A DNA stretch of 64,000 bases from Perkinsela sp. CCAP 1560/9 (taxonomy: Eukaryota; Protista; Euglenozoa: Kinetoplastea): contig CBFFSA010000012.1 in assembly GCA_965644495.1 (NCBI GenBank), forward strand, positions 1 through 64,000, written 5' to 3'. The notes below the pieces were generated by a model. That model made no database searches, was not told the DNA's origin, and worked only from the letters and a program-made list of their open reading frames with translations. The position numbers and the translations under genes are program-made. Each line of letters starts with the position of its first letter. Position 1 is the first letter of the stretch. Positions 7,070 to 64,000 of the stretch are shown here, piece by piece.

Positions 7070-7723
7070 AGAATCTCCAGTGCTGACTTGTCGACTACTG
7101 TACTACTTACTTAACCCTGAAAGTCACGACTCGCATTGCGTTACTACAGAAGGAAGCCAAATCCAATGTTTCGCTGCCCGGTACACTGCCGGAAACATTG
7201 TCCGCCCGATGTCCTCCCACCACACGTGCTCGTTCGTGTGCTTGACGGGGCTTATGTGATAATTAGCTGTAACAAAAGCATTCCAAGCAATCTCAGTAAT
7301 GCCGAACAAATCTTCACTCTCATCTCGGCAAAATAGGTTGTTGGCGCGATGCACTGATAAGGGACTAGCGCCCCGTACGCGCAAATAATTCACTATGCAT
7401 ATAGGAGAGAACCACATAACGTCCTGCCAAATCTTCATGTCGTGGTTTCTCTCAAGCCGGCTCCAATTTCGTTCAATGGCATCACTCAATCCAGATGGGG
7501 CATTTGGAGAAGCAGCAGTCTCACGAAGCAGTTCGAACATTGGAAAAACGCGTGTCGCAGTTCGTACCCGCTTTGAGTCTGAAAAACGGCGAAGGGCTGC
7601 GTGCAATTCCTTACATTCGCTTAAAAACAACTTTCCTTCCTCTCGCAACTCTTCATGACCGTGGACCCGAATCAGTCGAGCGCATTCCGCAACCGATTTA
7701 GATGCGCGTTCGTTTTCCAGTTC
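7070..7723 (-). pseudogene. C-terminal remnant of a hAT transposase (dimerisation domain)
   Basis: ELENERASKSVAECARLIRVHGHEELREEGKLFLSECKELHAALRRFSD aligns with ELENPRVCQSVRKCADLIAREGVDNLATSAKYFLEELAPIQKALQKFSD at 63.8-64 kb. hAT-like WW..FPAV..AA..LPS..CES* tail with in-frame stops. Confidence 0.85.
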
Positions 7724-8949
7724 TTAGTAAATAACCGTATAGATTTGTTACTAACCGTAAATTTCATTCAGATTTCCTCTCCAACTACGTCCGGATTCAT
7801 GAAGCCTCGCCTTCGCCTTCTACGTCCCTGCCCCCCACCCCCCCCCATTCCACACTCCGCATTCCTGTTCTTGCACTGTAGTTCTTGCACTGTGTGTAGG
7901 TACACCGCACCGAGACCGCACCGAATCCCCACCCGCAGCCCCTCACATGTATCCTATTCTAATACCTCAATCATAAATCTAATACAAATTTGTTGATCTT
8001 TCTGACGATTTATCCGTTAATCGTCTATCGCTTTCCTGAAGGATCAACATCTTCGCTGCACTCCTCCGAATCACGCTGTTGCTTGTTATTCCGCGGGACG
8101 TATGTCGAACCCTTACTTTGATACTCATCCCATGCGTGTAATAAGTTTTTTCAGGAGCTTGACAGATAAATTGGCGCTCTACTGCGGAGTATGCTTTGTG
8201 TGGCCTTGTGCCAATATCAGCGACATTTTCTTCACTTCTCATATCACACATAACGATTCTTCCTTCGAACTCACTTACGTAGATTACTTCTTCATCGATT
8301 GGAGTCTCGCGCGAATAACCTTCCGCTGCTGCGCGCCCGGCCACGGTGCTGTCCGTTCCGATGACTATGGACTGGAACTTGTTTGTGACAGCGATTTCCA
8401 TGACCTTTTTTATAGCAAACGACTCAACTGCAGCTGTTTCCATTTTGACAGGGACCTGAAAACCTCATATTTTCTGGGCATGTGCCGTATCTCACGATCG
8501 CTCTGGTGTGACATCGGCTGTGGCAAAGAGGACCGAATTTAGGCATTTAGGTCCTTTAATCTAAAGGACAATTATTTAAATTAAATAATTGCCAGTCTCT
8601 CGGGCACTGGTTCTCGCGCAGCGTCAGTAGCGCCAGATTTTTGGCGTTTATCATATCTTTGTCCGCAACACGCTTCTCGTCCCAGTTGCTGACTTGGTCA
8701 AGGCTACTCTGAGCTTTCGAGAGTCTGCCTAGTCGGTGCCTCGGTATGCCGAGGACGGCTGATAGCTGTCGGATGTAGCCTGCAATGCTGAACAAGTTTC
8801 TTAGGGTATTGCTCATCGGTTTCGTTAGGATGGAAGCCCACTTTTTCGCTACTTTTTCGGGATCCGCAGTCCAGGATAAAGCTCCATCTTTTTACATAAA
8901 CCTGATTCCCGTAGACGAAATCGCATGACGCTTCTTCCCGCTTCATATA

Positions 8950-47362: not shown

Positions 47363-48511
47363 ATGCCGCTCTCTCGGACGTGTGGCTTAATTGGCCTACC
47401 GAATGTAGGCAAGAGTACCGTTTTCAACGCGCTACTCACTTCGAAAATGGCACAAACTGGAAATTATCCATTCTGCACTATAAAGCCAAATATTGCTCGA
47501 CTTGCTGTGGCAGATACCAGGCTTTGTAAATTGCAAAAGTTCTCAAAGGCAGCGAAGATAATCCCGGTGGAAATTGGACTTACAGATATAGCCGGACTCG
47601 TTGCCGGAGCGCATCGTGGTGAGGGACTGGGCAATCAGTTTCTTGCGGATATTCGAAATGTAAGTGTGTTGCTCCATGTATTGCGCTGCTTTATAGGCGA
47701 TGGATTTTTGGATCCTACTCCCCTTTCGGATGCTCATGTTATACTGCAAGAATTGATACTCAGCGACCTGGCATTAGTGGAAAAACGATACGCTAGATTG
47801 ACTAAAGCTGGGAGTAAGAAGGGTGATGACGAACTTTCTTTTATAAAGTATCTTAAAGTGTGGCTAGAGGAAGGCAAGCCCGCAAAAACAGTCCTGTGTG
47901 ATTTTGACTCATCGCTACACAAAGTCGCCGCCCAAATTTTACGCGAGCTTCAGCTTTTATCGAGTAAACCCATGATATGGGTTCTAAATTTGGGGGAAGA
48001 CAAGTTTGAGCAGGAACAAATCCACTATCGGGAGCAAATTATCGCGGACAAAACTCTTTTTTCTTTGCCACCAAATTCCAACGAAAATGGAACTAATGAT
48101 TACGCACCAATTGTTAGTTTGAGTGCGAGATTGGAGGAAGAAATGTCCGACCTCTCACTTGACGATCGCGTGAGTTTTCGTGGTGAATATGGGCTTACGA
48201 ACGAATCTTGTGCTGCAGCCGTAACAAAAGTTGTACATGAGAGCTTAGGATTGGGAACCTTTTTTACGGTTGGACCAGAGATGGTTCACGCATGGTCCTT
48301 TCACCGTGGAGCAAACGTACGAGACGCAAGTGGAGAGATTCACTCTCACTTCAAGGAACACTTTGTTGCGGCACACACACTACACTGGGAGCAGTACATG
48401 ACTTATGGGTCACTGAATAAGGCAGACGATGCACTTCTTCGTCGTGACGCGGAATATATTCTAAAGGATGGCGAAGTGATGCATGTTTCTCATAAGGCAC
48501 CAAAAAAGTAA
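47363..48511 (+). CDS. ychF: YchF/OLA1 Obg-family ATPase
   Basis: GLPNVGKST, NYPFCTI, DIAGLV.GA..GEGLGNQFL, TFFTVGP and GEIHS. Confidence 0.92.
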   Translation: MPLSRTCGLIGLPNVGKSTVFNALLTSKMAQTGNYPFCTIKPNIARLAVADTRLCKLQKFSKAAKIIPVEIGLTDIAGLVAGAHRGEGLGNQFLADIRNVSVLLHVLRCFIGDGFLDPTPLSDAHVILQELILSDLALVEKRYARLTKAGSKKGDDELSFIKYLKVWLEEGKPAKTVLCDFDSSLHKVAAQILRELQLLSSKPMIWVLNLGEDKFEQEQIHYREQIIADKTLFSLPPNSNENGTNDYAPIVSLSARLEEEMSDLSLDDRVSFRGEYGLTNESCAAAVTKVVHESLGLGTFFTVGPEMVHAWSFHRGANVRDASGEIHSHFKEHFVAAHTLHWEQYMTYGSLNKADDALLRRDAEYILKDGEVMHVSHKAPKK

Positions 48512-58531: not shown

Positions 58532-59944
58532 ATGTTGATTGATCCCGCTGAATGGACAGACAAGCGCACGGTCACAAAATGCGAACGAGCAGGGTGTGGT
58601 CGTCGTTTCTTCGGGGTTCGCCGAAAAAATCACTGTCGTCAGTGTGGTCACGTATTCTGCACGCCCTGCACCGTCCGAATGCCGGACTCCGAGAAGAATC
58701 TCATTAAAGTTTGTCTGTCGTGTGGTAAGCGCGCCCGCCAGGAGTCCACGTTTCGTGAATCTGCGTTGGACCCCGCAAAGGATTCTGATATGGCCACTGG
58801 GGAGAAACCTCCAACACTCCCGGAACTTCGACCTTCCACGCCAGTGATGCGAAGGCGTAAGATTTGTGTTCTTGGCCTCCGTGGGGTGGGAAAGAGTGCT
58901 TTGCTGGCCTCTTTTGTGCAAGGCGGGTTCCGTGGCACCTACAACCCCACTACCAGTCAAGGCTCCGTCCTCGCCCACCGCACTGTGAACCAGATTCCCT
59001 ATGAGCTCGTTCTGCTGGACACCCCGGGGATGGAGGAGGCTACCACATGGACCTTCCCTCCCATCCTTAGCATTGGCACCCACGGGTACGTCCTTCTCTA
59101 CGCCGTAAGCCACCCCGCCTCCTTCCACGCCGTACGCAGCCTCCACGAAAAAGTCATCGAATGCGCCGCCCCGGAGACGCCCATCCTGCTCGTCGGCACC
59201 TGCTGCGGCGAGGAAACCACCCCCCTACCCCCAACGCACCTCACCCACACTCACCCCGCACCCGAACAAACCCCCGGCCCCCACGCCCCCCTCTCCCCCT
59301 CCCCCCCTCCCCAACCCCTCCCCACCACCACCCCACGTCGTGTACCCCCCTCCCCCACCCCTCCTCCCCACGGGGCATCCCCCTCCCACCCTCCCCCGCT
59401 CCCCCTCCCCCCCACCGCTACCCCCACCCGTCCCTCCCCCTCCCCTCCCCGTGGCTCCTCCTCCATCTCCACTCCCCGTCCCCAGGCCTCTGCTGCAACA
59501 ACAACAGCAGTAGCCGCAGTGACAGGGGACAGCCCCACCCCGGGGAGTAGCAGTACTACGGCTACTACCACCACAGAGCCTCCCCCGACGCTCCTCTCCA
59601 CCCCTCCCCCCGGGAGTGCTCCTCTGTTCCACCCGTTGCACGCGACGGGGGGCGTGGAGGAGGACCCCGCGGGGGGAGGGGGGATGGTAGAGGGGGGGAT
59701 GGAAGAGGAGGAGGTGGAGCCGATTGCGGCACGGAGGAAACGGGCGGTGAGTGTGGAGGAGGGGGAGCGGCTCGCGGAGGCCCTGGGGTGTCCGTTTATG
59801 GAGTGTAGTGCACGGACGGGGCTCCATGTGGAGCAGGTGTTTTTGTCCGTGGTGGAGAGGATACAGGGGTTGGAGAATAAGAGAAGGCCAAGGGAGGGGT
59901 GGGGGAGGGTTGAAAATTTGTTGTGTAGGAGTTTTGTAAAATGA
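58532..59944 (+). CDS. RHEB: FYVE-Rheb GTPase with a large low-complexity insertion
   Basis: FYVE RRKNHCRQCGHVFC; Rheb-type P-loop GLRGVGKS, YNPT, DTPG, HGYVLLY and ECSAR. Confidence 0.85.
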   Translation: MLIDPAEWTDKRTVTKCERAGCGRRFFGVRRKNHCRQCGHVFCTPCTVRMPDSEKNLIKVCLSCGKRARQESTFRESALDPAKDSDMATGEKPPTLPELRPSTPVMRRRKICVLGLRGVGKSALLASFVQGGFRGTYNPTTSQGSVLAHRTVNQIPYELVLLDTPGMEEATTWTFPPILSIGTHGYVLLYAVSHPASFHAVRSLHEKVIECAAPETPILLVGTCCGEETTPLPPTHLTHTHPAPEQTPGPHAPLSPSPPPQPLPTTTPRRVPPSPTPPPHGASPSHPPPLPLPPTATPTRPSPSPPRGSSSISTPRPQASAATTTAVAAVTGDSPTPGSSSTTATTTTEPPPTLLSTPPPGSAPLFHPLHATGGVEEDPAGGGGMVEGGMEEEEVEPIAARRKRAVSVEEGERLAEALGCPFMECSARTGLHVEQVFLSVVERIQGLENKRRPREGWGRVENLLCRSFVK

Positions 59945-60960: not shown

Positions 60961-61710
60961 ATGTCATCTGAGCCAGCCCCCCTCTTTAGCAAATCTCTGG
61001 AGCTGTTGGATAAGGAAATTGAAAGATTAACTCATCAAATAGAGCATTGCGGCGTTACCTCCTCCGAACCTTCAAAAACTGAAGCCTTGTCCGCACACGA
61101 GCACGCCAGTGATTCTAAGACAACGAAAACAAATTCGTTGCATCAAGATTCTACGATTGGCACGAATTCAACAAAGTTGCGAAAGGATACAGAAGGAACG
61201 AATGCGATTTCTGCGCTATCTCGTGTACAGCTTTTGGTGGGTCACATTGTGAGCTGCAAGCGACACCCAGAGAGTGAGCGTCTGCTTGTCGAGGAGATTG
61301 ACTGCGGCAAAGGTGATACCCCTCGTACGATCTGCAGCGGACTGGCTGAATTCTACACGCCGGAAACTCTCGTGGGAAAGAACGTCGTCGTGGTTGCTAA
61401 CCTGGAGCCTCGACGGTTTCGAGGGATAATGTCTCACGGAATGGTGTTGTGTGCGTGCAGCGAGGATAAGTCTCAAGTAGAGATACTGGAGTGTCCAACC
61501 GAGGTAGCCCCGGGAACACGTGTGACCCTTCCGAATCATGATGCGGATCCCCTACCGGTGCTAAAGAAGAAGTTGGCGAAATATTGGGACGAAGTGGCTC
61601 AGGATTTGAAGACGAACGAAAAGTGTGAAGCGGCGTATCAGAGCGTTCGTTTTGAGTTCGAAGGAAAGCCGATTCTAGCCGCATCCCTTGCTAATGCTGC
61701 GATTTCGTAG
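60961..61710 (+). CDS. Arc1/EMAPII-type tRNA-binding OB-fold protein (synthetase complex cofactor)
   Basis: VGHI..HPESERL.VEEIDCG, RTICSGL, VVANLEPR..RGIMSHGMVLCA; N-terminal coiled coil. Confidence 0.9.
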   Translation: MSSEPAPLFSKSLELLDKEIERLTHQIEHCGVTSSEPSKTEALSAHEHASDSKTTKTNSLHQDSTIGTNSTKLRKDTEGTNAISALSRVQLLVGHIVSCKRHPESERLLVEEIDCGKGDTPRTICSGLAEFYTPETLVGKNVVVVANLEPRRFRGIMSHGMVLCACSEDKSQVEILECPTEVAPGTRVTLPNHDADPLPVLKKKLAKYWDEVAQDLKTNEKCEAAYQSVRFEFEGKPILAASLANAAIS

Positions 61711-61771
61711 TCTGATTTTCTATGGGTTAACAAAGAGACTACAAAAGAAAAACATAATTGTACTTACACAT

Positions 61772-61826
61772 CATAGCTGTCATTCGACGTCGAATTCGAC
61801 GTCGTTCGACGGTCGAAAGGTCGAAA
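61772..61826 (+). repeat. TCGA-repeat/palindrome cluster, probable left subterminal region of the hAT element
   Basis: Six TCGA copies, including the palindrome GACGTCGAATTCGACGTC, about 130 bp before the transposase ORF. Confidence 0.55.
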
Positions 61827-61953
61827 CATTTTGAGTGCTTGTGTGGTTTCTGAAAGAATTTTTTTCAACAGAATATATGTTTATAAAATGTTTAAAAAAT
61901 GTATTTGCAACCAGTCTTCTACTTTTTTGTGTTAATTTACTTCTTTTTTCACA

Positions 61954-64000
61954 ATGCACACCTCTGTTCGAGGAAGAGGGCGCATGATTCCTATCCGCAT
62001 ACCTTCTCCCCCAGCTCTTTCATCAGATGCAATCGTGCCAACTTTAGCTGAAGCAAATTCTTCCGAATCTGTTTCATCTACTACTCCTTCAGTTACTTCG
62101 GTTCGTGCCAAGAGAACCAATTCGGCGAAGAAGAATAGAACTGCCATGCAGCGAGATGCTTCCACGGAAGCAGCAGATGGTCCTACCCAGAGCAGATTTG
62201 AAATTTCCGATAACGTTCCGTCAGGGAGTTATGTTCCTGTCTCAGTACGACGAGAGTGTACCGCGAGGCTTGAAGAGGAAATGTCGTCCTCTCCATCACA
62301 ACAGGCAAGCTCTGTAAGGCAAGTAGTTCGAAAACAGCTTGTACAGGACCCAATGCGGTTTCCCCGTATTTCGACAAAATTCTTTCGTGAACGCTGCTTG
62401 GGAATGGATACCCCGCCTGGTAGAACGAAAGATTTGGAGAAGAAAAACAAAGAGTGTCGCGAATACGCCGAGAAATATCCTCGGCCCCATCTCGTGAATA
62501 CCATGGGCCAGCGGACTCACATAAAGTGTCGCGACTGTCCGTGGTGGAGTCATTCGCTCCATAACAACCATTACTATCACCATATCAATCACACTTGTTT
62601 AGTGCGCGAGGGACAGAGAATCGCAAACGAACCGGAACTTTTTTCACTGACCCCGAACGACAATTCAATGAGTGTAAATGTTTTTGTTCGTCGCTGCGTT
62701 CCCTGTCTTGTGGCAAAGACGAACTTGTCATGCAAAGCTGCACACGCTTTACTTCGTAACTATGAAGAATTACGCCCCAAGCGAGCAAATACTGAAGAAA
62801 TTCTCAATGCACTCGGCAACAATCACAGGGTCATGCGTGATTGGGAGAAGGACTTGGCCAACGAAATATGGGAAAAAATGATTTCAAAAATCGATATTCA
62901 TCCTTTCTTCGGGGTAGCTGTGGATGCTGGGGTTGATTCCGTGCTCAACGAGCACGTATTAGTAGGGGTGGTGTATGTTTCAGATGAGCAATATCTATTA
63001 CCACCCATGTATCATCCGAAGCGGAAGGCATTCAACGGCAAAGAAACAGCTGAGAGTTTGGTTAATACATTGAATTCTATTCTCGGCATTACCCTGGTAC
63101 GAAAAATGAGGTTTTTAATGGTGGATGGCTGTGCCGTTAACCACGTGGCCCGTGATGAGGCAGAAGGAGAATTAAAAAGAATATATGATCGCGTTCAAAG
63201 AATTGGGGAGTCGGACTGGATAAACTTCGGAAACCGGGCCGTGGACATGATGCCACACGTCTCCTTACTATCTTGCTTTGGTCATTTTCTCAATAACCTC
63301 GCGATGGATGCGATGAAACCCTTTCAGGAAACACCCCTTTTTGAACTTAAAAAGCTCTTCAGACAAACATTTTATGGACATGACAAGATCTGTACGAAGA
63401 AGGGGCGGTATCGTGGTGTGGCCCTAGACGTTCTTCTTGGATCTTTCGACGAAGAAACTAACAAAGCGGAACAATTTTTCACTCAATGGTATGGGGGGCT
63501 GTCTAGCAATAAACTGGACGATGAATATCAGACAGAGCTGGTGTGTCAGCTTCGCAGCAGCGTACAAATTTTGAAACAATATGCGCCCGATGAAGCTGAT
63601 ATAATTTTGGCGGAACTGAACGCTCAGCATGAAAATATTCCTCGCTGTCGTGACGCACTTTCATTGTATGGACCTCAAGTAATTGAAGCTGTTCGTAGAG
63701 CAAAGGATGTACACGGCATTACGGCTCCTAAGTTAGGGGGAGTTACTCGCTGGTGCCATGATAAGTTCAGCAGCATTTCCTTCTTTTCTACTCAGTTACC
63801 TACTGTTGTCGCGTTCCTGAAGCAAGAACTGGAAAACCCCCGAGTTTGTCAGTCTGTACGTAAGTGTGCGGATCTTATTGCTCGGGAAGGGGTAGATAAC
63901 CTGGCGACTTCCGCAAAATATTTTCTTGAAGAACTAGCTCCTATCCAGAAAGCGTTACAAAAATTTTCGGATTTAGACGGTACGCCTTTAGCAACGGGAG
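61954..64000 (+). CDS. hAT-superfamily transposase, open to the window end (at least 682 codons; absent from the ORF track)
   Basis: Manual translation has no stop: BED-like CRDC...HHINHTC, first Asp VAVDAGVD, second Asp LMVDGCAVN, CxxH motif SCFGHFLNN and VTRW. Confidence 0.9.
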   Translation, partial: MHTSVRGRGRMIPIRIPSPPALSSDAIVPTLAEANSSESVSSTTPSVTSVRAKRTNSAKKNRTAMQRDASTEAADGPTQSRFEISDNVPSGSYVPVSVRRECTARLEEEMSSSPSQQASSVRQVVRKQLVQDPMRFPRISTKFFRERCLGMDTPPGRTKDLEKKNKECREYAEKYPRPHLVNTMGQRTHIKCRDCPWWSHSLHNNHYYHHINHTCLVREGQRIANEPELFSLTPNDNSMSVNVFVRRCVPCLVAKTNLSCKAAHALLRNYEELRPKRANTEEILNALGNNHRVMRDWEKDLANEIWEKMISKIDIHPFFGVAVDAGVDSVLNEHVLVGVVYVSDEQYLLPPMYHPKRKAFNGKETAESLVNTLNSILGITLVRKMRFLMVDGCAVNHVARDEAEGELKRIYDRVQRIGESDWINFGNRAVDMMPHVSLLSCFGHFLNNLAMDAMKPFQETPLFELKKLFRQTFYGHDKICTKKGRYRGVALDVLLGSFDEETNKAEQFFTQWYGGLSSNKLDDEYQTELVCQLRSSVQILKQYAPDEADIILAELNAQHENIPRCRDALSLYGPQVIEAVRRAKDVHGITAPKLGGVTRWCHDKFSSISFFSTQLPTVVAFLKQELENPRVCQSVRKCADLIAREGVDNLATSAKYFLEELAPIQKALQKFSDLDGTPLATG

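Follow-up and report, generated by a model that had tools for sequence, protein, structure and literature searches.

Hermes, a hAT element of Musca domestica (PDB entries 4d1q, 6dwz and 8edg), is the closest described system for the locus studied here. Elements of the hAT superfamily are 2.5-5 kb long and are bounded by terminal inverted repeats (TIRs) of 10-25 bp (PMC3942097). The third catalytic residue of Hermes, Glu572, is essential and needed for every step (PMC2533014), and its H268 and W319 are the reference positions for the CxxH and RW motifs (PMC4763223). Hermes generates a target-site duplication (TSD) of 8 bp, and hAT5, hAT6 and hAT7, with 5, 6 and 7 bp, are recognised as exceptions, TSD length having changed repeatedly in hAT (PMC12730594). 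Of these groups, which we compared by description only, hAT5 and hAT6 lie among animal Blackjack-like families and hAT7 among fungal ones (PMC12730594). The last catalytic residue of RNase H-fold transposases is sometimes Asp (PMC4763223), and precedents in other superfamilies are mariner (DD34D, against DD34E in Tc1) and piggyBac (DDD). In the literature covered by our searches we found no Glu/Asp switch described within hAT, no mention of a DDD triad for hAT5, hAT6 or hAT7, and no other hAT element with such a triad; Repbase Reports and most subscription journals lie outside this coverage, so that a prior description may exist. With respect to the host group, class II elements are absent from trypanosomatids (PMC12278014); for kinetoplastids, our literature searches yielded a single DNA transposon, Merlin. 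Merlin likewise provides a DNA transposase in non-trypanosomatid kinetoplastids, namely Bodo saltans and Perkinsela, but it belongs to another superfamily, and its Perkinsela copies, for which neither TIRs nor TSDs were found, were judged inactive (PMC8101967). In contrast, the element described here has intact ends, TSDs and polymorphic insertions.

The window, by which we mean the whole analysed stretch of 64,000 nucleotides of Perkinsela sp. CCAP 1560/9 (contig CBFFSA010000012.1, hereafter C12), ends within this element, and the remainder was located further along the same contig (Table 1). The initial annotation had noted a cluster of TCGA repeats upstream of a transposase gene. This cluster is indeed present and corresponds to the left TIR plus subterminal repeats, and the right TIR, which was to be sought beyond the window, was found there. 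The stop codon of the upstream host gene lies 61 bp ahead of the left end, and every near-identical genomic copy starts at the equivalent of window position 61772-61773. TCGA occurs six times in the first 55 bp of the element, mirrored by nine occurrences in the last 150 bp. The TIR pattern had 13 matches in the genome and none with a reversed control, which argues against chance. Both the TIR length and the element length fall inside the ranges for hAT. Short TIRs, subterminal repeats and a size of about 3 kb are shared with Hermes, whereas the CATA ends are a difference. By analogy with Hermes and Kat1, the transposase would bind the TIR and the TCGA subterminal repeats through its BED finger.

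Table 1. Features of the element and its surroundings. Positions are those of the window unless contig C12 is indicated.
Feature	Position	Strand	Remarks
Upstream host gene, tRNA-binding domain	60961..61710	+	PF01588, E 4e-30
TSD, left copy (acacat)	61766..61771	.	Same 6-mer after right end
DNA transposon	C12 61772-65260, beyond the 64-kb window		3489 bp; single intron-less 864-aa ORF
Left TIR	61772..61794	+	23 bp, CATAG start; common 5' boundary of all near-identical copies
Subterminal TCGA/TTCGACGTCGAA repeats	61783..61826	.	Probable BED-finger binding sites, by analogy with Hermes/Kat1 (PMC4763223)
Pyrimidine tract and first downstream AG	61915..61972	+	Candidate trans-splice acceptor
Transposase ORF	61984..64000 in window; C12 61984-64578 in full	+	864 aa in full
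BED-like finger	62518..62598	+	H179, C182, C185, H190, H200 conserved
First catalytic Asp314	62923..62925	+	Invariant; first RNase H core strand in model; aligns with Hermes D180
Second catalytic Asp381	63124..63126	+	Invariant in alignment A2; end of core strand in model
CxxH (431-434) to RW (589-590)	63274..63753	+	About 155 residues between
Asp811, position of Hermes Glu572	C12 64414-64416, past window end		Gap-free profile alignment
Right TIR	C12 65238-65260, past window end		Inverted copy of left 23 bp
TSD, right copy	C12 65261-65266, past window end

The ORF can be read from ATG 61954 (874 aa) or ATG 61984 (864 aa) to a stop at C12 64578. Up to the window end this amounts to 682 and 672 codons, respectively, in agreement with the stop-free ORF of at least 682 codons reported initially, and all motifs named at that stage are in place (the C182-x2-C185...H200 finger, D314, D381, C431xxH434 and R589W590). 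The CxxH and RW motifs are a hAT feature. The BED-like finger gave a weak but in-order alignment with that of Hermes, had no Pfam match and lies in a part of the model with low confidence. The in-window part of the ORF had no match in Pfam, and the full protein scored below the cut-off for the hAT C-terminal domain PF05699 (E 0.08), which its relatives exceed; this region nonetheless aligns gap-free to Hermes. A phmmer search of the single protein against PDB gave no match, so that a profile was needed; when built from 87 relatives, it matched Hermes with an E-value of 4e-11. The AlphaFold model (pLDDT 84.8) matches Hermes with a Z of 24 and an rmsd of 3.3-3.4 over about 400 residues, as compared to a Z of 9 for the P element and about 10 for integrases. 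Hermes is thus the best match by both profile and fold, which bears out the assignment as a hAT-type transposase. The likeness extends over the two Asp residues, CxxH, RW and the C-terminal hAT region, at an identity of 11-13%. The spacing between CxxH and RW differs, being about 50 residues in Hermes, which implies that the insertion domain of the element's protein is longer by roughly 100 residues, these being helical.

A third catalytic Glu had been expected past the window end, but Asp811 was found instead. In the gap-free C-terminal alignment the C-D-S of the family sits on S-E-R of Hermes, which places Asp811 at Glu572, and in the AlphaFold model it lies on the helix after the insertion domain. 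Two other candidates for the third ligand, a conserved Ser-Asp near residue 663 and Glu615, were rejected, as both are located in the insertion domain of the model. Asp is present in 41 of the 43 homologs covering the site, with both GAT and GAC codons in use; the two exceptions are a His in an Apiculatamorpha protein and a Gly in one fragment. Families in which this Asp is fixed are only 25-40% identical to each other, and between subfamilies the synonymous sites are saturated (pS 0.79-0.86) compared to a pN of 0.19-0.39, which shows that the proteins have been under purifying selection. Judged from these alignments, Asp occupies the predicted third catalytic position throughout the lineage. 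D314, D381 and D811 would then act as metal ligands, CxxH and RW would serve nicking and hairpinning of the flanking DNA, and both ends would be joined to the target with a 6-nt stagger, all by analogy with Hermes and Kat1. The Apiculatamorpha spiralis relative that carries His there is expressed (transcript P0285) and has the other motifs intact; it is a candidate inactive or domesticated copy.

The TSD also departed from expectation, as it measures 6 bp rather than 8 bp. It was exact in 11 of 13 copies from Perkinsela, one of which came from a second assembly of apparently the same organism, and it is within Perkinsela copies only that this length is established. Among five end-to-end copies of the element's own family, four have an exact 6-bp TSD, each of different sequence, and the fifth (on contig C14) has a TSD that is one base off and a changed terminal base. 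Seven copies from five more distant families in this assembly and one copy from the other assembly, each with its own CATA...TATG ends, gave seven exact TSDs and one matching in 5 of 6 positions. Lengths of 5, 7, 8 and 9 bp did not fit, and the sites showed no clear target consensus. An 8-bp TSD with the element end set at TAG was tried and failed. TIR sequences differ from one DDD family to the next, yet all of these families have 6-bp TSDs. Two outside contigs (L056 and L072) show CAT...ATG ends and no matching duplication, possibly because short-read assemblies joined the flanks of different copies. Two canonical hAT features, the D-D-E triad and the 8-bp TSD, are therefore absent, and on this basis we provisionally treat the element as a variant lineage outside Ac, Buster, Tip and hAT6.

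The initial annotation had proposed an intact and potentially active family, and the copies found in the genome agree with this: they are near-identical, dispersed and flanked by their own TSDs, and insertions are present or absent depending on the sample. The five end-to-end copies are 97.7-99.9% alike and lie at unrelated sites. Between those on C12 and C14, 11 of the 3489 positions are different, and the ORF is complete in each. A frameshifting deletion of 7 bp is common to two further copies, which nevertheless occupy different sites, and one copy has an internal deletion of 1077 bp. Four public DNA data sets, all from one study, contain the stretch, and it should be noted that their contigs show presence and not absence. 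In run X1, a contig joins the left flank of the window element straight to the right flank, skipping 3495 bases (3489+6). This empty C12 site contains the 6-mer only once, with six letters fitting both sides and no excision footprint, and thus has a clean pre-insertion form. The joined contig has the depth of the flanks, and the element itself is present at about 9-10 times flank depth in X1 and about 15 times in X2. Conversely, X1 and X2 contain loose ends outside the 13 TIR matches of the assembly, one where a left flank ends and one where a right flank begins, with the same 6-mer, and the joined empty form of that site is present at C3:544524 in this assembly. The common 6-mer and the empty site suggest that the two loose ends belong to one insertion. 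The two sites would thus show reciprocal differences among samples of a single species, which supports recent movement. Of the doubts raised initially, a misassembly is unlikely, given that another run joins these flanks over one 6-mer copy, and a single syntenic copy without TIRs is at odds with a multi-copy, TIR-bounded element.

At the protein level the genome contains at least 67 matches to the transposase, most with 33-57% identity; these are matches and not a copy number. Extra hAT C-terminal domains outside the DDD matches are found at C1:1064750, C18:152608, C10:358597, C1:4025686 and C37:13188, among others, and may represent canonical DDE hATs beside the DDD lineage. Around C3:226.8-230.0 kb (L049:2824-6030), a copy of the element is nested in another unit, which has inverted ATAATGCAT-rich repeats at its borders; the nested copy stops at an N run. 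Broken ORFs of a non-LTR retrotransposon flank a frameshifted copy at C3:216-224 kb (L046:14-1974 and 7649-7939); they encode reverse transcriptase and a restriction-like endonuclease and are CRE/SLACS-like by eye. An old solo right end, 84% alike and with changed terminal bases, is located at C4:340.3-340.5 kb (L071).

A full HMMER search returned 125 relatives outside this genome, many of them contributed by a second assembly that probably represents the same organism. Word-index protein searches gave few relatives, JGI metagenomes one and viral contigs none, and atlas searches led to generic hAT/BED clusters and assigned no taxon to the sequence flanking a distant homolog. The only named relatives among the looked-up matches are from transcriptomes of Papus ankaliazontas and Apiculatamorpha spiralis, free-living prokinetoplastids that were grown on bodonid prey (PMC7859406). 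These matches may stem from contaminating prey, in which case the source would still be a kinetoplastid. In a quick, midpoint-drawn tree without canonical hATs, the nine sequences included from this genome group together (support 88), and the branch holding them also contains Apiculatamorpha (95) and a strongly supported group with one Papus protein; a second Papus protein is placed in the other deep branch. The at least six subfamilies in this genome, with 35-57% identity, make up a single clade, and the named sequences next to it are those of Apiculatamorpha and Papus. As drawn, the tree fits a long residence in kinetoplastids. An acquisition from the amoeba host, as suggested initially, is not supported, since the named relatives come only from cultures of free-living prokinetoplastids and occur in both deep branches. 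On another contig (ENA ERZ24900291 ctg2664l; L078:3984-9700), a gene of a DDD family lies beside a Merlin/IS1595-type transposase, EF-1alpha and pieces of reverse transcriptase/endonuclease.

The setting of the element is that of a kinetoplastid genome. The window is a one-strand, intron-less gene array, the genome has the kinetoplastid MRP gene, and a sequence that we take to be the spliced-leader core motif occurs five times in the genome compared to none in a control. These five exact sites (C3:214245, C3:851483, C10:340892, C12:255059 and C21:14575) are dispersed and do not form one tandem array, and retroposons headed by the leader may account for some of them. In accordance with the initial annotation, a pyrimidine tract is present (61915-61952), and the first AG after it lies at 61971-72. 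The candidate acceptor has 16 pyrimidines out of 20, compared to 13-19 for host genes in the window, and ATG 61984 follows the left end at a distance of only 212 bp. Four young copies (on C12, both on C5, and on C1) are co-oriented with an identifiable neighbouring host gene, a fifth has the orientation of an unannotated ORF, another is located among retroelements, and the older families show mixed orientations; the co-orientation of the young copies is suggestive only. Public RNA runs did not contain the stretch, save for a 236-nt piece in one run that we guessed to be RNA. As judged from kinetoplastid biology, the ORF would be read from the polycistronic transcript of the host and matured by trans-splicing at AG 61971-72, so that copies facing with the cluster would be the expressed ones. 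Promoter-less, trans-spliced expression is probably the likeliest mode.

With a TIR-bounded unit, an intact ORF, a Hermes-like fold, dispersed near-identical copies that have their own TSDs, and presence/absence differences, the element is probably an autonomous cut-and-paste DNA transposon that has been active recently, and it would represent a divergent hAT lineage with a long history in early-branching kinetoplastids. In a different view, the DDD proteins would have weak catalytic activity or none, and canonical DDE hAT transposases encoded elsewhere in the genome would move the elements in trans. Glu-to-Asp changes cripple several DDE enzymes, and other hAT-domain loci are present in this genome. 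Nevertheless, the Asp is fixed across families of such low identity with saturated synonymous sites, the remaining catalytic motifs are conserved too, and each family combines its own TIR sequence with a 6-bp TSD, unlike the 8-bp rule, which makes mobilisation in trans quite improbable. We consider a recent horizontal acquisition from the amoeba host to be just as improbable. Intron-bearing amoeba copies are poorly represented in the protein collections searched and could have been missed, but the single clade of subfamilies next to Apiculatamorpha and Papus and the second Papus protein in the other deep branch speak against such a transfer, and no amoebozoan name appeared among the looked-up homologs.

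Marginally less credible still is the idea that the element is a mere new member of the hAT6 group. The TSD length is the same, but hAT6 lies inside an animal, Blackjack-containing lineage (PMC12730594), and no annotated animal hAT is among the 125 HMMER matches as far as the looked-up ones show. Moreover, TSD length is a character that has changed repeatedly, and none of the accounts of hAT6 that we found speaks of a DDD triad. The least credible reading, already disfavoured, is a P-element-like origin or a separate new superfamily, as could be proposed from the CATAG termini and the odd triad. P elements have CANRG ends, which the CATAG of the element resembles, and the full protein falls under the Pfam hAT cut-off. 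Against this stand the Z of 24 for Hermes compared to 9 for P, the presence of the RW motif and the hAT C-terminal region, and the finding that neither THAP nor GTP-binding domains were detected in the protein. Returning to the divergent hAT lineage, we see about an even chance that a fuller account holds in all its parts: that this is an undescribed, ancient lineage with a rebuilt D-D-D site and a 6-bp stagger, that it is widespread among uncultured protists and the early-branching kinetoplastids and continues to transpose, that it is expressed without its own promoter by polycistronic transcription and trans-splicing, and that it is the first demonstrably mobile DNA transposon of Kinetoplastea.

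A naturally active lineage with Asp as third ligand and a shorter stagger would provide a direct test of catalytic geometry and of the determinants of TSD length in hAT-type enzymes. Since trypanosomatids lack class II elements (PMC12278014), Merlin looks inactive (PMC8101967) and the present element appears mobile, DNA transposons would have been lost specifically in later lineages, and this loss would then not be a consequence of polycistronic transcription. As a native element, it could also be used to make insertions and to tell strains apart.

Several host genes of the window deserve mention in their own right. The gene at 47363-48511 encodes a YchF GTPase whose best matches, at about 40%, are all bacterial and mostly alphaproteobacterial where named, with no named eukaryote among the 120 matches listed. 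The gene at 58532-59944 combines a FYVE finger with a Ras-family GTPase, the latter being interrupted by a long Pro/Thr-rich insertion. Several leucine-rich-repeat genes of ~270-330 aa are distributed through the array between 36046 and 57181, and another is located just past the element.
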